A stretch of 63,624 bases of DNA, counting the filler, from Octopus bimaculoides (taxonomy: Eukaryota): assembly GCF_001194135.2 (NCBI RefSeq). It is 7 parts of 6 records of this genome, joined end to end, with 100 filler letters (N's around TTAATTAATTAA, not from the genome) between each part and the next. Parts side by side here need not be neighbours in the genome. Positions count along the whole stretch, not along the records: positions 17,260 to 32,741 come from NC_068987.1; 6 more parts are not named here. One strand, written 5' to 3'. Positions 11,762 through 30,735 of the stretch are shown piece after piece (position 1 is the first letter of the stretch; the number at the start of each line of letters is the position of its first letter). Below the pieces are notes generated by a model. The model searched no databases and was not told the DNA's origin. It worked only from the letters and a program-made list of their open reading frames with translations. A program made the translations under genes and the position numbers.

Positions 11762-12969
11762 TTGGGTTGTCCGGAAAGTTCGTGCCGATTTTTACAGGAA
11801 AGAAAAAGGTCAATAAATACTTGCCATTACATTTTAATCAACCAAACATGTACCATTTTGTTGCACAATGCGTCTCCATCTTTACTTTAATTTGCAAATA
11901 CCCTCTTTCCAGAACTGAGGTGGTTTCATGGCAAAGAATTCATCAAGGTAACTTTTTATGACATCCACGGAATTGAAATTTTTTACCATAAGGAATTTTC
12001 TGCAGCGACCTGAATAAGGGGAAATCCGAAGGAGCAATATCTGATGAATATGGAAGGTGGATGGTAAAAATATCCCTGCTGAGCGGCAGCAATTTTTGTC
12101 TGGTTCCCAAAGAAACGTGTGGCCTTGCATTAACATGCTGGAAAACAACACCCTTCATGTTGGCCAATTCTGGACGTTTCTCTTGAATTGCTGCTTTTAA
12201 CTCATCCATTTGTGTGCAGTAGTTCCCACTAGACACAAAGTAAGACTTTTTAGGGGGAAGACCCGCTTTTGGGGTGGCTAGGGATGACTCATGTCACTTA
12301 CTCCAGGATCGCTTTCTCTGAACATTTCGGTAGATAATACATTTCTCATCACCTGTCAATTTCCTTTAAAAAAGGCGCGTTTTCATTCCGTTTATAAAAC
12401 GAATCACAGATGAAAATGTTCTTCTCACTCAATTCATGTACCCAAACATCATAGCGATTTGTGGGCCCAATCTTTACCAGGTGCTCATGAACGACGGATT
12501 TTAATAGTTTGAGGCTTTCTGCCAATTCTCGGGTTGTGCAATGTGGGTTATCCTCAATTAATGACTTGATTTGGTCATCATCTGTAGTGGATAGTCTGCC
12601 CGATCGCTCTTTACCAATAAGGCTACAAACTCCAGCTTGGAAACTTGAGAACAACTTCCGTATAGTTCTTTCAGATAAAGAAACATCACCGTAAGTTGCG
12701 CATATTTCTTTGGTTGCTTGTGAGGTATTTTCCCTCTACGGAAAAAAAAATGCAACAAGTGCCGAAAAGGAACTTTCTTATCTTTCATTTAAAGGGTTAC
12801 AGAATCAACACCGGTTATAGGAACATAAACCTTCTTCCACGAAAAGATAGCTTAAACTGTGTTCTAAATGGAAGTGTAGTCAAATTCTATTTTATGGACT
12901 CAAATATGTTCTAAAATAAGTCGAAATATAAGCTACTATAAATTGGCACGAACTTTCCGGACAACCCGA
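11762..12969 (-). mobile_element. Near full-length mariner element with both TIRs; transposase frameshifted
   Basis: 30-bp TIRs at 11762-11791 and 12940-12969 match 28/30, with TA on both flanks. Peptides include ERSGRLST, FQHVNARPHV and YSSDIAPSDFPLFRSLQ (YSPDLAPSD motif). Confidence 0.95.
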
Positions 12970-13439
12970 TATTATTTTGTGTTAACGCGTGTGTATCGCT
13001 TAACAGATTGAAGTATTGTGAAATAGATTGACTTATAAGTTTTTCAATTTCTTCTGATAAATACCAATATTCATTTCATATAAATCATTATCAGGAGAAC
13101 CGTTTCTTATTAGCAAATTTCCTTCGAGCTATGTCAGCAGCATATAAAATGGCATTCCAAATACTGGCATTTTTCGGGTGGGCTGAAGATTCTGAAGAGA
13201 AAAACAAATAGCACTTGTATATTAAACAATAAAGCATTGTTAGTGAGTTTATTTTTTAGGGAATTTGTTATTTAATATATGAAAGACGCGTGTATAGACT
13301 TAATAAAAATACCTTATTCTGCGATACATTTTGGAAATATATTTCATATTCAGGAGTAAATTCAGTAAAATATGCTTTACATAGATTTTAATACAATAAA
13401 TATTTCTTTGAGAAGGATAAATGAGCATAACTTTCACAT

Positions 13440-17984: not shown

Positions 17985-18015
<31 letters not shown>

Positions 18016-20694
18016 NNNNNNNNNNNNNNNNNNNNNNNNNNNNNNNNNNNNNNNNNNNNNNNNNNNNNNNNNNNNNNNNNNNNNNNNNNNNNNNNNNNNN
18101 NNNNNNNNNNNNNNNNNNNNNNNNNNNNNNNNNNNNNNNNNNNNNNNNNNNNNNNNNNNNNNNNNNNNNNNNNNNNNNNNNNNNNNNNNNNNNNNNNNNN
18201 NNNNNNNNNNNNNNNNNNNNNNNNNNNNNNNNNNNNNNNNNNNNNNNNNNNNNNNNNNNNNNNNNNNNNNNNNNNNNNNNNNNNNNNNNNNNNNNNNNNN
18301 NNNNNNNNNNNNNNNNNNNNNNNNNNNNNNNNNNNNNNNNNNNNNNNNNNNNNNNNNNNNNNNNNNNNNNNNNNNNNNNNNNNNNNNNNNNNNNNNNNNN
18401 NNNNNNNNNNNNNNNNNNNNNNNNNNNNNNNNNNNNNNNNNNNNNNNNNNNNNNNNNNNNNNNNNNNNNNNNNNNNNNNNNNNNNNNNNNNNNNNNNNNN
18501 NNNATACGCCATAAACACCGGGAAACCGGGTCCATGAGCCTGGCTAGTCTTTAAAAGGGCGAAGAAAGAAGAGAAATATATATTATGAATTAGTGTTGCA
18601 AGATTTCTGATATTAAACCGTGTGCTTAAACAGATATTGTTGTCTTTTGAGATGGTTATTTTTTTTTTTTGCCAAATAAACATATGTACTATATGTTCAT
18701 TCTTCACTCCTTATATAACTGTTCTTATTTTAACTCATGGCCATTGTTCGGAAATCTTTTGCCACACATCTGTGACCTCTTCAATGACACTTTCCGTGAA
18801 TTAAAATAAGAACAGAAAGTTATAACACTCATAACTTGCCTGAACATCTTGCGCACCTACAGGTGAAACTCACAGTAGCAATAGATTGACTCATTATTAG
18901 TCTCTACTATATTATATATTCTAGAGTACTCTACTATATATAGGGTACTCTACTATATATAGAGTACCCTTTATTCTGACAGTTACCGCAAAACGTTTAT
19001 ACATACAGTCAGGCAGACAGAAAGCAGACATACATAAACTTAACTACATATATGTACACATACGCAGACACATGGTGTGAGTTATAATTTAAATTACGCA
19101 ACAACTAACCATTATTTAGAATTCCACGTGTATTCCAGTTCGTTTTATTGTCTTGGTATCGTTTGGTTGGTACCCGCTGCTGATCTAGTCAATGCTGCAA
19201 ACAATGACATCCTTCCGGAAAGTTGCGCAGATGAATCGAATTCGAGACTTCGTGGCTGCTATGTGAACTTCTTACTCATTCAACCGTACTGCACGCAGAN
19301 NNNNNNNNNNNNNNNNNNNNNNNNNNNNNNNNNNNNNNNNNNNNNNNNNNNNNNNNNNNNNNNNNNNNNNNNNNNNNNNNNNNNNNNNNNNNNNNNNNNN
19401 NNNNNNNNNNNNNNNNNNNNNNNNNNNNNNNNNNNNNNNNNNNNNNNNNNNNNNNNNNNNNNNNNNNNNNNNNNNNNNNNNNNNNNNNNNNNNNNNNNNN
19501 NNNNNNNNNNNNNNNNNNNNNNNNNNNNNNNNNNNNNNNNNNNNNNNNNNNNNNNNNNNNNNNNNNNNNNNNNNNNNNNNNNNNNNNNNNNNNNNNNNNN
19601 NNNNNNNNNNNNNNNNNNNNNNNNNNNNNNNNNNNNNNNNNNNNNNNNNNNNNNNNNNNNNNNNNNNNNNNNNNNNNNNNNNNNNNNNNNNNNNNNNNNN
19701 NNNNNNNNNNNNNNNNNNNNNNNNNNNNNNNNNNNNNNNNNNNNNNNNNNNNNNNNNNNNNNNNNNNNNNNNNNNNNNNNNNNNNNNNNNNNNNNNNNNN
19801 NNNNNNNNNNNNNNNNNNNNNNNNNNATGTAATGCATGTATATATATGCGTGTGTGTGTGTATGTATATATATATATATTTATATATAAATACGTGTGCA
19901 TGTTCGTGTGTTGAAACTAGAACCATTATATACCTACAGATGTATACATATTCACATACACATGCATACAAATACACCCACATGGCGCGGGTGTTCACAC
20001 AGTGACAATCCTACATGCATTCCTGCTTTAGAGAACTACCAGAAATTTTAGGAGTTGATGTATAATGCAATTATAATCAATACCATAAAAATGACAGGAA
20101 CTCATTTTCTCGACTTCAGAATAAATGAATACGTGTCCGCGGCGAACTTTGTTTTAAGAAGGTAAAGGGACATAAATAGAATGTACAAGAAATTAGTTCC
20201 CCTTAGATAAACATTATCAAATGAACATCTAAGTATCTCTTACATAACAATATTTAATCACTCGCATAACGATGTACAAGGAACTACATTTCAATATCAA
20301 ATAACGAGCAAACATTTGTCATAAATTTTGTTCTAGAATTGACATATTTTTATTTTAAAGACCGAAAAGAATAGTTATTTCTTAATTCGGATTAAGTCCA
20401 GCATTGTGGGTAATTACGGTACCCTTCTCACAGTGTACATTGTTTTAATGACTCTAAATTGTAACATATAGAGTATTTGTAAAATTCCTTGAAACTAAAT
20501 AATACTACTGTGAAATTTACTTGATGAAAATATAGGGAGTTCCATGAAAATTTTATATCAATTTCACCCAAAGGTTTGAAGGCATACAGGTCTTGTAGCA
20601 TATCTGAAAAACAGTATGTCCCGAAATGATTGCAATGTACTGCATTGCTTTTTTTTTTTTAGAAAAGAAATGTTTTATTGTTTCATCTTTTGTT

Positions 20695-21102
20695 CATGAT
20701 GATGATGATGAATGATGATGATGATAGGAAGGATAATGATGAAAGGAAAATGATAGAAACGATAATAGTGATGAAAATATTGATGTTAACAATAACTATA
20801 ATGATGATGGCGGATGATGACGATGACGATGACGATGATGATGATGATGATGATCATTATGATGATAATGATGATGATATGATAATGATGAAAATGATGA
20901 TGATTATGATGTAAAGAAGATCAGAAAGATGATATAATGATGGTGATGAACTGATGATGTTGGTATGAGCAATAAAGATAATGAGACGAATGGTATAAAC
21001 GATAATGATAATGAGAACGATTATGTTAGTGATGATGGTGATGATGATATTGATGATGATGACGATGATGATGATGACGATGATGATGACGATAATGATG
21101 AC
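20695..21102. repeat. Degenerate (GAT)n trinucleotide tract
   Basis: About 400 bp of GAT/GAC/AAT repeats ending just before a polypyrimidine tract. Confidence 0.9.
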
Positions 21103-21134: not shown

Positions 21135-21311
21135 GTTTCAAAAAATTGTTAGAAAAACGAAAACGAAAGACAGGAGGATATTAATCTGGTGCATTACCAC
21201 ACATCAAACCAGTCGACACATCCCGATATTGAAACTACACCGAACGGATTAATTGAAAAAAACAAATCATTCAATCAATTTAACTGTTTGTTTATGTGCA
21301 ACATACATAAA

Positions 21312-21581
21312 ATGAGAATTACTACAGCCGTCACACTAGCACTTTTGCTAGTTGTTATTCATCCAATTAAACTGTCGTTGGCGGCCCAAACTCCATGTAA
21401 ACCGTGTAAAATAAATGATGAACTCATATTGCAGAAAGCCTGGGTCTGTGGTGAATGTGGCTCCTTATACAAGGACACTGCAATAGAGTACTGTTGCGTA
21501 TGCGACCAGGGATTCTATGACAAATGCCTCATCGCTACGGGTATCGATAAGGACAGAGACACTAATCTTAATCCGCACTAA
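21312..21581 (+). CDS. Secreted 8-cysteine peptide precursor, 89 aa (neurohormone/toxin-like; possible CHH/ITP-like fold)
   Basis: ATG in A-rich context (CATAAAATG). Signal-like MRITTAVTLALLLVVIHPIKLSLA is followed by AQTPCKPCKINDELILQKAWVCGECGSLYKDTAIEYCCVCDQGFYDKCLIATGIDKDRDTNLNPH*. There are no stops, frameshifts or transposon motifs. Confidence 0.85.
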   Translation: MRITTAVTLALLLVVIHPIKLSLAAQTPCKPCKINDELILQKAWVCGECGSLYKDTAIEYCCVCDQGFYDKCLIATGIDKDRDTNLNPH

Positions 21582-21793
21582 CATTCCTGAACGATCTCCT
21601 TTTTTTTTTCTGTTGGCGGATTGGCAGGATTGTTAAAGCGAAGATTAAAAATAACTCGTATTTACTTCTCTTTACGTTCTGAGTTCACATCCTGCTAAAG
21701 TCAACTTTGTTTTTCATCCTTACTAGTACCACTAGTAAAATACTTGGACCAATACAATTTAAAGATACTCATCTCTCCAAATTATTATTATTG

Positions 21794-21831
<38 letters not shown>

Positions 21832-22567
21832 GTTGTTGTTGTTGTTGTTGTTGTTGTCGTTGTTGTAATCGCTATTATTGTCGTTGATTTCATTTGACAA
21901 AATATAAATCTAAGGTCTTGTGGCAAAAGAATACAGTCGAGTCAATTGATTTCAGCAAGGTTTCTTGAAAGTTTTTTTTATAAGCCCTGTTATCTATGAA
22001 ACAAAAAGTCAATTCTGTTAGTAATTTGAACCTTGATTGTAGAAGGGCAAAATTAAAATGTCGTATGATCATTTAGTCCATTGTTCTAATTTTTATGCCA
22101 ACCCTCCAATCCCTATTATTACTACTGATGTTATCCTCTTCCAGTTATTTCGCGCCATTTACTTCTTGGCAATTTGCGGAGTAAAAGTTAGATGGACACT
22201 TTTACGAGATATTTCCCTTCATTAACACAGTTAAATCTATCGTAAAAGGCCAAAGCTTGCCTATTAAAGGCGCCATTTTGTTCGAAAATCTTAGCGTCAT
22301 CTCTATATTGCTTTTGTTTCAATAAATAAACAAACGACAAGATGAACTGGAGTGTGAGAAGGAGAAGAGGAAAGCTTCAGGACCTGTATTACTTCTCAGA
22401 GACTTATAAGTTGGTAGCAGTTGATCTTCGGTTTGATAATCGGCTGTCAGCGTCTCCAGAAATTGTTATTGTTATTATTATTATTTTATGAAAACTCACA
22501 GCTTATTTTGCTGGGTATGATGGGAAGTGGCAGCTGTCCACAGCCAACAGACTAAGGTGACAATTGT

Positions 22568-22659: not shown

Positions 22660-23397
22660 NNNNNNNNNNNNNNNNNNNNNNNNNNNNNNNNNNNNNNNNN
22701 NNNNNNNNNNNNNNNNNNNNNNNNNNNNNNNNNNNNNNNNNNNNNNNNNNNNNNNNNNNNNNNNNNNNNNNNNNNNNNNNNNNNNNNNNNNNNNNNNNNN
22801 NNNNNNNNNNNNNNNNNNNNNNNNNNNNNNNNNNNNNNNNNNNNNNNNNNNNNNNNNNNNNNNNNNNNNNNNNNNNNNNNNNNNNNNNNNNNNNNNNNNN
22901 NNNNNNNNNNNNNNNNNNNNNNNNNNNNNNNNNNNNNNNNNNNNNNNNNNNNNNNNNNNNNNNNNNNNNNNNNNNNNNNNNNNNNNNNNNNNNNNNNNNN
23001 NNNNNNNNNNNNNNNNNNNNNNNNNNNNNNNNNNNNNNNNNNNNNNNNNNNNNNNNNNNNNNNNNNNNNNNNNNNNNNNNNNNNNNNNNNNNNNNNNNNN
23101 NNNNNNNNNNNNNNNNNNNNNNNNNNNNNNNNNNNNNNNNNNNNNNNNNNNNNNNNNNNNNNNNNNNNNNNNNNNNNNNNNNNNNNNNNNNNNNNNNNNN
23201 NNNNNNNNNNNNNNNNNNNNNNNNNNNNNNNNNNNNNNNNNNNNNNNNNNNNNNNNNNNNNNNNNNNNNNNNNNNNNNNNNNNNNNNNNNNNNNNNNNNN
23301 NNNNNNNNNNNNNNNNNNNNNNNNNNNNNNNNNNNNNNNNNNNNNNNNNNNNNNNNNNNNNNNNNNNNNNNNNNNNNNNNNNNNNNNNNNNNNNNNN

Positions 23398-23440
<43 letters not shown>

Positions 23441-24814: not shown

Positions 24815-25746
24815 GTTACTATGTTGCATGAGCGCTGTACTACCTCTCTATCCAACTTGACCCATGAGGACAGAAGGGCTTTCTTCAGATCTGATACATT
24901 TGGTTAAGAGCGAGGAGAAACATAACTCTCTAAGATTTGACCAGATAACAAAGTCCATGAGATTGATGTCTGGACTTGAGGCGGGGCCATGTCGTGTTGT
25001 CCCCAAAACTGCTGAAATGCTCTTTATACCATGTCTGTATCAAATTGAATATAACGGTCACCAAAGGTTTTTGCGACCTAGCGTAACGATTTCCCGTCCA
25101 ACATTTTCACTCAAACTTCACAGTTGACGAAGATCAAGGGAGACTTTGATCCATCACATGCAACTGCGGCCCACACCATGAGTGAAGCTGGCTTCTGACG
25201 GCATAATTGACTCCTGCTACCTTCGAGTAAGTCTCCTACATTACGTGCATAAGACCTGTAACTCTGCCTGTTGGTAACTGCCTCCACGGTGAAAATCTTC
25301 TATTCAGACACTTTGTTAGCGACTCACTTCATCTCAGCTAACATGGTTTTACCCCTGTCGAGTCTTTTCCTCTTGAAAGTTGCTGAAATTAACTGCTAGG
25401 ATTGTTTCTTGTATGCAGTTAGTTTAAAATCCTCTTTGCAAATCTTGTGATTTGACGATTTCGAAATATCAAGCGCTTTTGCAATTCTTCTTGCACTCCT
25501 GCGGGGATTTCGTTTCATTCATTTCTTCACAGCTTCAACAGATTGTTTGGTACGAATTGATCATTTCCTATCAGGAAGCGGTTTGCCAGAGGTAGTAGCG
25601 GACTCCATATATCGTCTTTAGGCATTGAACACTGTTTTACGGCACACATTCACTGTTTTGTTATGCCCTTGTTGCTCACTCCAGCTGTTGAACCGATATT
25701 CTTTAGGAAGAGTTTTAAAAATGGATAAATCTTTCTGGGACACCCT
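24815..25746 (-). mobile_element. Tc1/mariner superfamily element (maT/DD37D-like), degenerate
   Basis: Minus frames give KRNPRRSARRIAKALDIS, KIFTVEAVTN, SLMVWAAVACDGSKSPLIF and SDLKKALLSSWVKLD. There is a terminal GGGTGTCCCAGAAAG next to TA at ~25746. Confidence 0.8.
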
Positions 25747-28064: not shown

Positions 28065-28770
28065 TTAAATGATAAACTTCTGGAAAGTTTTACAGATTTT
28101 TACAGTTCTAGTGATGGATTGGATCTGTAATCTTCGAATTAGCTTTCTCCATTCTGGTTTTGAGAAGCCTAATTTTCCAAGATTGGTATTTACGCAGTGT
28201 GTTACATATCTCAGGCCCCCAATAATTACAGATATAAATCTAAACTTGTAATCTGGATAGAATAACTGCAAATTTCTTCAGCATAGGTATTTTTTTTCAC
28301 TTATCTTCAGCTTTATGTTAACAACCGCTGGGCAGCTAATTTCCACAACTGTGCACAGTTTCTCTTCTCTATCCCAAATCATTATATCAGGTCTGTTGTG
28401 CTTACATTTTATTGAGGTTTTCACTGATACATTCCACCAATATTCCTTTTTTATTATGAGTGGCTATGGCTTCTATCATATTGTGGGTTCCTCGGGATTA
28501 TCCTTCCGACGGATTTCATAATAGTGTCCTAGCTACAACATCATGTCTCATCGGTAGATAATACCATGATGACATGTTCAGACAACTGCTTATGATGTGG
28601 GTGATATTTTCAATGTGAACTCCACAAAGTCTGCATCGGTTGTCACATTTTACGGCTTTTCTGCATCTCTATCCCTTTTGTACATCATGTACATGGTTGA
28701 TATTTCCTGTTCCTGGACTGCAAAAGCATACCCTTCAAACACGTAATATTACGTTTCTCTAATATCGCGA
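28065..28770 (-). mobile_element. 3' end of a restriction-like-endonuclease (RLE; R4/NeSL-type) non-LTR retrotransposon
   Basis: EYWWNVSVKTSIKCKHNRPDIMIWDREEKLCTVVEISCP (PD..E nuclease motif), then LFYPDYKFRFISVIIGGLRYV...RLQIQSITRTVKICKTF. Confidence 0.8.
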
Positions 28771-29138: not shown

Positions 29139-29813
29139 AATAATATTAGGGACAAAATCCAAAATTACAGGTAAAAACTCAATTCAAATCAATTTATAAA
29201 AAATTAAAATTAAATTGAGCTTTATAGATTATAATATATAAAAGTATATAGTTTTAGATAAAGATAGTATCTTATGATATTTACTTTGTTTTATATTATA
29301 CTCATTTATTGTGCTTTTNNNNNNNNNNNNNNNNNNNNNNNNNNNNNNNNNNNNNNNNNNNNNNNNNNNNNNNNNNNNNNNNNNNNNNNNNNNNNNNNNN
29401 NNNNNNNNNNNNNNNNNNNNNNNNNNNNNNNNNNNNNNNNNNNNNNNNNNNNNNNNNNNNNNNNNNNNNNNNNNNNNNNNNNNNNNNNNNNNNNNNNNNN
29501 NNNNNNNNNNNNNNNNNNNNNNNNNNNNNNNNNNNNNNNNNNNNNNNNNNNNNNNNNNNNNNNNNNNNNNNNNNNNNNNNNNNNNNNNNNNNNNNNNNNN
29601 NNNNNNNNNNNNNNNNNNNNNNNNNNNNNNNNNNNNNNNNNNNNNNNNNNNNNNNNNNNNNNNNNNNNNNNNNNNNNNNNNNNNNNNNNNNNNNNNNNNN
29701 NNNNNNNNNNNNNNNNNNNNNNNNNNNNNNNNNNNNNNNNNNNNNNNNNNNNNNNNNNNNNNNNNNNNNNNNNNNNNNNNNNNNNNNNNNNNNNNNNNNN
29801 NNNNNNNNNNNNN

Positions 29814-30110: not shown

Positions 30111-30184
30111 CCTTTTCTATTTTAGTTTTAGTCCGAGAATTGCAGCCATGCTGGAGCATCGCCGTTTGCTTTGCTAGACTTTCG

Positions 30185-30735
30185 CTAAACCTCCTCTGAT
30201 ATGTGACATTTGGTGGATGTGGGAGTTTGACGTTGCTGCCCTCATCTGTGTTTTTTGCCTTGAGGTAGGTTCATCCGAAACTCTTGACAGAAGGAGATCC
30301 AGTTTTGTTTTGAAAACGTCTACATCCACGCTATGCAGGTCTTTCTGGCTTTATGGGAGGATATTGAAAAACTGTGGGTTATTGAAGCCCAAGCTGTTGC
30401 AGTATCTGATCTTGTATCCTGATGGCAATGTTGGGATTTTTGGTACTATGCAGTTTGTGCAACTGACAAAGCCAAAGTTTGGCACAAGTTTTTCTAGGAA
30501 TATCCAGATATATTACTGTATACCTTTCCCGCCTTCGTTCTTTGAGTAGTCTTAACTCTTTCAGTGTATCCCAGTAGCTGATAAGTCGTACTGTGTCGAT
30601 CTTCTTTGAGTACTTTCGCTGGATCGCCTCGTGTCCCGTCGTTAATTTTACACTGCTTGGTTGAACAAAGTTGGGAGCAATGATCCAGACGGCTGAAGAC
30701 GAAAATCCTCCAGAGGACCATCATGGTTTCCTTTT
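30185..30735 (-). mobile_element. CR1/L2-like LINE 3' fragment
   Basis: MMVLWRIFVFSRLDHCSQL; shares its 3' region (CACCAAATG.CACATATCAGAGGAGG) with 49480-50580. Confidence 0.65.

Follow-up and report, generated by a model that had tools for sequence, protein, structure and literature searches.

The Octopus bimaculoides DNA analyzed here (the window, 63,624 nucleotides in its full length, filler included) carries a gene, with a single coding exon, for a secreted and predicted-helical peptide with eight cysteines. Considering the evidence as a whole, we think it likely that this peptide represents an ancient paralogue of the four-Cys CHH DREPs of Spiralia and that it is a probable neurohormone. 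The assignment of the spiralian CHH DREP peptides to the CHH superfamily is due to Koch et al. (2023; PMC10501145), who relied on structure and gene structure and whose supplement includes the DREPs of O. bimaculoides itself (KOF87272.1) and of the bivalve Dreissena (KAH3886336.1). Both of these have four Cys and are distinct from the eight-Cys proteins described here.

The gene contains an uninterrupted ORF of 89 codons at 21312..21581 (+) that translates into MRITTAVTLALLLVVIHPIKLSLAAQTPCKPCKINDELILQKAWVCGECGSLYKDTAIEYCCVCDQGFYDKCLIATGIDKDRDTNLNPH (89 aa plus stop), with the eight Cys at residues 29, 32, 46, 49, 61, 62, 64 and 72. The resulting spacing, C-x2-C-x13-C-x2-C-x11-CC-x1-C-x7-C, reproduces exactly the one given for this ORF by an earlier reading made directly from the DNA (the sequence-only reading). 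An in-frame ATG at 21294, 18 nt upstream, extends the product to a 95-aa form (MCNIHKM...), the one deposited in the protein database (P0001), and both Met are kept in the octopod Argonauta. The coordinates of the gene and of the parts of its product are collected in Table 1. The length of the ORF proves nothing by itself since the 15.5-kb piece of the window in which it lies holds 71 mechanical ORFs of at least 50 aa. Pfam gave no support to transposon-like ORFs elsewhere in this piece, and no paralogue or canonical DREP gene was found by tblastn in the piece or in the corresponding Argonauta locus. Both octopod loci carry one copy each, with tandem expansion absent. The DNA around the ORF is AT-rich and full of microsatellites and assembly gaps.

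Table 1. Features of the eight-Cys peptide gene, in positions of the window.
Feature	Coordinates	Strand	Evidence
Full CDS, longest form, 95 aa plus stop, one uninterrupted coding exon	21294..21581	+	Argonauta blastn match from 21292 to the stop; dN/dS 0.05
ORF of 89 aa plus stop, from the second conserved ATG, AAAATG context	21312..21581	+	Translation
Predicted signal peptide MRITTAVTLALLLVVIHPIKLSLA	21312..21383	+	Hydrophobic core, KD 2.9; equivalent leader in all five family members
Predicted mature peptide, ~65 aa, eight Cys, acidic (10 D/E vs 7 K/R)	21384..21578	+	AlphaFold2 helical model; CHH DREP homology
N-terminal C-x2-C (Cys1, Cys2), specific to the eight-Cys family	21396..21407	+	Family and merged alignments
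Core V-C-G-E-C-G (Cys3, Cys4), aligned with spiralian DREP CxxCG and CHH C23/C26	21447..21458	+	hhalign, HMMER
CC-x-C cluster (Cys5, Cys6, Cys7), in predicted helix 2	21492..21503	+	AlphaFold2, hhalign
Cys8 in Y-D-K-C-L-I-A, aligned with the last DREP Cys and CHH C52	21525..21527	+	hhalign, HMMER
C-terminal tail LIATGIDKDRDTNLNPH	21528..21578	+	Alignment; model low-confidence/disordered from residue 52
ATTAAA, candidate polyadenylation signal, 63 nt past the stop codon	21644..21649	+	Consensus match only

The sole close homologue among 5.8 billion proteins was a 95-aa 'hypothetical protein' of Argonauta hians (P0002), with 80% amino acid identity, encoded by a single exon on a 34.5-Mb contig (L001). 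The sequence-only reading of a solitary gene coding for a secreted eight-Cys peptide is supported, and the host is a mollusc. When the whole 15.5-kb piece was compared by blastn with 20 kb of the A. hians locus, only 21292..21581 aligned, at 77% identity. Most of the nucleotide differences between the two coding sequences (47 of 67) fell at third codon positions. The Nei-Gojobori dN/dS was 0.05, over synonymous sites that were saturated (pS 0.71), and the dN was 0.09 in the mature part vs 0.17 in the leader. These values show a protein that evolves under strong purifying selection, and hence a real and functional gene.

To look for more distant members, we searched 1.84 billion cluster representatives exhaustively with HMMER, using the mature-peptide alignment as query. 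Beyond Argonauta, this yielded three further real relatives. One is P0003, a 97-aa protein from the Logan assembly of run ERR4030425 that ends in ...DTDLH-GKR-ISAFKRFQ. Another is P0008, a 127-aa 'uncharacterized protein' of Dreissena polymorpha (XP_052228346.1) ending in ...NAAGK. The third, P0006, comes like P0011 and P0012 from Tara Oceans metagenome scaffolds, and these proteins of 141-143 aa each contain two tandem copies of the domain. The hits P0004, P0005, P0007 and P0009 (1500-2200 aa) were dropped as repeat proteins with scores summed over many short stretches. Word-indexed searches with the family alignment or with the Dreissena protein gave no further members, and the family is very sparse in the databases. 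As recovered here, it is found in molluscs (octopods and the bivalve Dreissena) plus two unassigned marine sequences. A Logan contig (L002) is the only possible transcript, and it is ambiguous.

The eight Cys were invariant in six domains from five proteins, and every family member has a hydrophobic leader. In the octopus protein the hydrophobic core of this leader, TAVTLALLLVVI, averages 2.9 on the Kyte-Doolittle scale over 12 aa. By the -3/-1 rule, the preferred cleavage would fall between SLA and AQTP, after Ala24, with cleavage after Ala25 being possible; the sequence-only reading had considered the latter, which would expose a Gln as a possible pyroglutamate. Argonauta has Asn at that position, so the feature is not conserved. 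The Argonauta CDS (L001) and the Tara scaffold ORF (L003) are uninterrupted, and in Dreissena the leader and the mature peptide share one exon (L004:12716-12988), the annotated 40-aa N-terminal extension from an upstream exon being probably 5' UTR. Since the window, Argonauta, Tara and Dreissena all lack an intron within the leader-mature CDS, the single coding exon can be taken as a family trait.

The link of this family to the CHH DREPs was assessed with an alignment of 18 DREPs and 2 Conus CHH doppelganger toxins. Compared by hhalign, the two alignments matched over 40 columns with a probability of 93.9% (E 1.6e-7, score 36.75). A column-shuffle null gave scores of 9.85 +/- 2.03 with a maximum of 17.6, and none of 200 shuffles reached the observed score (z = 13.3). 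Besides, the DREP HMM matched five of the five eight-Cys proteins in the same register, and the identity between both groups over the core was 21-47%. The eight-Cys family is clearly homologous to the spiralian CHH DREPs, as judged from these alignments. The four Cys of the DREPs correspond to Cys3, 4, 6 and 8 of the octopus peptide, Cys6 being aligned with the third DREP Cys, and Cys5 and Cys7 being specific to the eight-Cys family. As O. bimaculoides and Dreissena carry separate four-Cys DREPs, the eight-Cys and four-Cys families are best regarded as paralogues. The split between them predates the divergence of cephalopods and bivalves. In Dreissena, the accession numbers of the two proteins differ by just 161.

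The CHH DREPs and the Conus CHH doppelganger toxins (for example Aplysia GBCZ01041960) are also molluscan and also present a signal peptide followed by an acidic, predicted-helical peptide. As in the DREPs, the secretory precursor consists of a leader and one peptide of ~55-70 aa, the Tara member having two tandem domains instead. The shared motifs are [LITV]-P near the N-terminus, C-x2-C-G-x-[FLY]-[YF]-[GK] with a Cys 11-12 residues further on, D-[KQ]-x-F and [FY]-x-K-C-x-[IA]-A. The differences are nevertheless marked. The DREPs have four Cys (two disulfides) against eight here, and CC-x-C replaces a single Cys. The eight-Cys family has an extra N-terminal C-x2-C, located in an insertion of ~8-11 residues just past the shared [LITV]-P motif, and a 2-residue deletion ahead of the last Cys. 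Unlike the DREPs, the octopod eight-Cys members lack a C-terminal basic run. In the DREP genes the CDS is split into two exons by a phase-2 intron that separates the leader/pro-region from the mature peptide, whereas the eight-Cys CDS is a single exon.

An AlphaFold2 run with the six-domain alignment produced an all-helical model (pLDDT 77.8, pTM 0.63), its helices spanning approximately residues 11-28, 31-39 and 41-51 of the mature peptide. An earlier model from two sequences was beta-rich (pLDDT 56) and was set aside as low confidence. In the six-sequence run, three of the five models scored lower (pLDDT 46-68), and together with the two-sequence result this indicates that the predicted fold rests on a shallow alignment. 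The beta-rich model would fit a very different reading in which the ORF codes for a zinc-binding module of an intracellular protein (of PHD, zinc-ribbon or rubredoxin type) or arose by chance in DNA rich in AT and repeats, where ORFs of this length are common. PDB sequence searches did return PHD fingers (Alfin-like, E 0.0034), PRDM9 zinc fingers and rubredoxins, which share a superficial C-x2-C ... CC-x-C ... C pattern. We discarded these matches, obtained both for the protein by itself and for the profile of the family, as products of Cys bias driven by the CxxC, and the PRDM9 scores are sums of repeated 12-residue matches. The octopus peptide has a signal peptide and a helical model, the hydrophobic leader is kept in all the members, the His of the PHD position is absent and, of the residues that would serve as ligands, the homologous four-Cys DREPs have only half. 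A chance ORF is excluded by the dN/dS together with the conservation across octopods and a bivalve. We consider this reading extremely improbable.

When the helical model was compared with the PDB by Foldseek, the first match was the centipede toxin mu-SLPTX3-Ssm6a (2MUN; target-normalised TM 0.78, rmsd 2.0 A, 45 columns), and k-Ssm1a (2M35) ranked third, with E-values that were not significant (6.4 and 9.2 respectively). The structures of CHH, MIH and the spider toxin Ta1a (2KSL) were absent among the matches listed for the six-sequence model. Of the structural expectations raised by the sequence-only reading, an all-helical fold is what the six-sequence model shows, with Ssm6a, at its E of 6.4, as the best match and with neither CHH nor MIH listed. 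Ssm6a is listed in a 2026 review as a HAND toxin of the CHH superfamily, and k-Ssm1a was among the top structural neighbours of a published DREP. The scoloptoxins Ssm6a, SSD609 (2MVT) and k-Ssm1a, the last two being sequence relatives of the first, come from arthropod venoms and have 46-52 aa and six Cys, while here we deal with an octopod mollusc (plus Dreissena) and eight Cys. Their framework, C-x9-C-x2-C-x12-CC-x8-C, fits Cys 2, 3, 4, 5, 6 and 8 of the octopus peptide (C-x13-C-x2-C-x11-CC-x9-C), which suggests that this set, rather than the Cys 2, 3, 4, 5, 7 and 8 of the sequence-only reading, may correspond to the CHH frame. By hhalign, the similarity between the eight-Cys family and the scoloptoxins was marginal (column-shuffle p about 0.05), and the CC doublet that both have in common probably arose in parallel.

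In arthropods, hormones of the CHH/ITP type govern metabolism, the balance of water and ions, moulting and reproduction. To our knowledge, they were believed to be restricted to ecdysozoans before 2023. The ecdysozoan CHH/MIH/GIH/ITP peptides (PF01147; 5B5I, 5XS1, 1J0T) are likewise secreted, helical (here by prediction), disulfide-stapled and of ~65-72 aa. They share with the eight-Cys family the V-C-x-x-C motif followed by a Cys ~12 residues later in the next helix, the F-x-x-C-[LM] motif and an N-terminal Cys 13-15 residues ahead of the CxxC. Sequences resembling the C-terminal amidation signals of CHH are found in P0003 (GKR) and Dreissena (GK). On the other hand, CHH has six Cys in the arrangement C-x15-C-x2-C-x12-C-x3-C-x8-C, which a six-Cys subset of the eight approximates with loops 1-2 residues shorter, and its C-x3-C stands where the eight-Cys family has CC-x-C. 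The phase-2 intron common to the CHH and DREP genes is missing from the eight-Cys CDS.

Direct searches gave little. Pfam PF01147, the CHH/ITP profile with which the sequence-only reading had proposed to check the assignment, had no match at E<=10 in any of six proteins; this profile recovered Carcinus CHH (1.8e-20) but missed the DREPs and Ssm6a, indicating low power for distant members. Other Pfam families at E<=10 amounted, across all the members, to leader-region noise (DUF2706, Moricin). Against a CHH/MIH alignment (PDB sequences 5XS1, 5B5I and 1J0T plus Carcinus CHH), the eight-Cys family alone reached an hhalign probability of 1% and a column-shuffle p of about 0.08, in a comparison of little power that mis-registered even the CHH-scoloptoxin pair. 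Even so, it set VCxxC and F/Y-x-x-C in the register anticipated from the sequence. A PDB sequence search found the CHH-like 5XS1 at E 0.64, which we also put down to Cys bias. Merging the eight-Cys and four-Cys sequences in one spiralian profile raised the score against CHH/MIH to 19.2, over a null of 9.7 +/- 2.0 that did not reach it in any of 150 shuffles (HH probability 12%), and placed the CxxC on CHH C23/C26 and the last Cys on C52. The CHH/ITP-like character proposed for the peptide is thus sustained indirectly, through the DREP homology, and not by the direct CHH/MIH and PF01147 tests.

These figures bear on the alternative that we have an orphan secreted Cys-rich family, genuinely similar to the DREPs, and that the connection of DREPs to CHH would reflect convergence of small helical disulfide peptides. 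In its favour, the values obtained by the family profile against CHH and scoloptoxins fall inside the shuffle null or close to it, hhalign fails to set even CHH and the scoloptoxins in the correct register, the Foldseek E-values lack significance, and there are differences in the number of Cys, in the length of the loops and in the structure of the gene. We regard convergence as quite unlikely.

Under the preferred reading, that of a CHH-like peptide paralogous to the DREPs, we infer that the single-exon gene would produce a prepropeptide in which the signal peptide, once cleaved, is directly followed by the acidic mature peptide of ~65 residues. Its three predicted helices would be stapled by four disulfides. 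Cys3, 4, 6 and 8 would form the DREP core, and the N-terminal CxxC together with Cys5 and Cys7 would most probably fasten the N-terminal segment to helix 2. By analogy with CHH and scoloptoxins, this tie may be comparable to the C7-C43 bridge of ecdysozoan CHH, plus a further bridge. The product would most likely be a secreted signalling peptide, a neurohormone acting on a membrane receptor. A signalling role appears as the most likely one because of the better conservation of the mature part over the leader, the acidic character of the peptide, its occurrence in a bivalve that has no venom and the putative GKR/GK signals of some members. Insect ITP acts through a membrane guanylyl cyclase in Drosophila and through GPCRs in Bombyx, according to the 2026 review, and one could guess by analogy that the receptor of the octopus peptide belongs to one of these two classes.

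A CHH-like ancestry could also have led to an exocrine role, be it as a pheromone, in defence or as a component of saliva or venom. CHH-like scaffolds have been repeatedly recruited into the venoms of spiders, centipedes, wasps, remipedes and cone snails (PMC10501145; 2026 review), and centipede toxins are the best structural neighbours of our model. Extra disulfides are typical of stabilised secreted effectors, and the Tara member is a tandem two-domain precursor. However, strong purifying selection with the mature part better kept than the signal peptide is the opposite of the usual toxin pattern, and it is the pattern that signalling peptides show (Koch et al., 2023; PMC10501145). Furthermore, a member exists in Dreissena, a filter-feeding bivalve, the gene is single at both octopod loci, and the acidic net charge is contrary to a cationic antimicrobial role. 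An exocrine function seems to us unlikely.

The eight-Cys family rather than the four-Cys DREPs might retain the ancestral CHH/ITP architecture, with a bridge from an N-terminal Cys to the helix that follows the CxxC, comparable to C7-C43, plus an additional one; the DREPs would then be derived and simplified. We find this doubtful. If true, CHH/ITP would have its closer counterpart in the eight-Cys family, which might then act on the molluscan orthologues of the ITP receptors (membrane guanylyl cyclase or GPCR).

CHH-like peptides of molluscs and annelids, including O. bimaculoides, were published in 2023 (PMC10501145), and the 2026 review gives four Cys and four helices as the usual condition of the lophotrochozoan homologues of CHH. 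The supplements of Koch et al. (PMC10501145) do not contain the eight-Cys motif strings, and literature searches by peptide strings or member accessions did not find the eight-Cys single-coding-exon branch. The suggestion that this gene may represent an unrecognised lophotrochozoan CHH-fold hormone has therefore to be narrowed: CHH-like peptides in Spiralia were already known, and it is the eight-Cys branch that is apparently undescribed. A second ancient paralogue in cephalopods and a bivalve would make the spiralian CHH-like repertoire larger than reported, and an eight-Cys form with a putative N-terminal disulfide anchor would narrow the structural gap to ecdysozoan CHH. It also offers, for studies of expression, peptidomics and receptor deorphanisation in octopus, a concrete candidate that is highly conserved.

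The conservation reaches the end of the protein. The C-terminal tail of the octopus peptide differs from that of Argonauta by one residue (R/K), and P0003 has a similar tail, ..ATGLQNKDTDLH, followed by the GKR, which we read as a putative amidation/dibasic site. Small genes such as this one escape annotation, and the family counts about five database entries, none with a descriptive name.

In the bivalve Dreissena polymorpha, the eight-Cys member P0008 has a gene model with a 40-aa N-terminal extension in RefSeq/GenBank, which comes from an upstream exon and precedes the genuine leader (MMQRMYKLALILALL...). The annotation has probably translated a 5' UTR exon here; a single exon encodes both the leader and the mature peptide. 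The same genome submission contains the four-Cys DREP paralogue (KAH3886336.1), and since its protein accession is just 161 away from that of P0008 (KAH3886497.1), there is a hint that the two paralogues may share a chromosome region.

The Tara Oceans precursor, from a planktonic organism, has the eight-Cys domain twice in tandem, encoded by one ORF without interruption, and three near-identical variants of it were found (P0006, P0011 and P0012). A splice-acceptor-like ttttcag stands immediately 5' of the ATG of the ORF on scaffold L003. In the case of P0003, from Logan contig L002, a ribosomal protein S26e ORF is located upstream on the same strand, with 260 nt between the two ORFs, and past ...LPKLYV it departs from the usual S26e sequence. 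Either transcripts were assembled into a chimera in this contig, or it represents genomic or unspliced sequence, so it does not count as evidence of expression.

When the profile of the eight-Cys family (A3) was compared with the PDB, plant Alfin-like PHD fingers matched with an E value of 0.0034. The match was carried by CG-x-CG...CC-x-C...F-x-x-KC, so that three-quarters of a zinc-finger ligand pattern are mirrored in a family of disulfide peptides. This likeness is notable yet probably coincidental.

Features mapped around the octopus gene and in the records of other family members
Feature	Location	Remarks
Degenerate (ATG/GAT)n array	window 20801-21101	~300 bp; ends ~190 bp upstream of ATG
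(ATT)n/(GTT)n arrays	window 21781-21886	start ~200 bp past stop codon
N runs (assembly gaps)	window ~17990-18500, 19300-19830, 22660-23400, 29320-29810	
Short broken ORFs	window 24848-25287, 28065-28271, 30174-30724	all (-); transposon-remnant look, by eye
Tandem eight-Cys precursor	L003:65-490	Tara Oceans
S26e ORF	L002:34-321	Logan ERR4030425
P0003 ORF	L002:582-875	Logan ERR4030425
P0008 model exons	L004:10001-10120, 12716-12988	CM035915.1

In the 15.5-kb piece with the octopus gene, the broken minus-strand ORFs gave us the impression of transposable-element remnants; Pfam returned no supporting match for them. Two stretches among these ORFs looked by eye mariner/Tc1-like ('...SPDINLMDFVIW...') and LINE-tail-like ('...FKTKLDLLLSRVSDEP...'), respectively. 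Many long entries in the mechanical ORF list of the piece are artefacts that span N runs. Trinucleotide microsatellites flank the eight-Cys gene on both sides, and these arrays are the source of spurious ORFs that encode poly-Asp, poly-Met, poly-Ile and poly-Leu.
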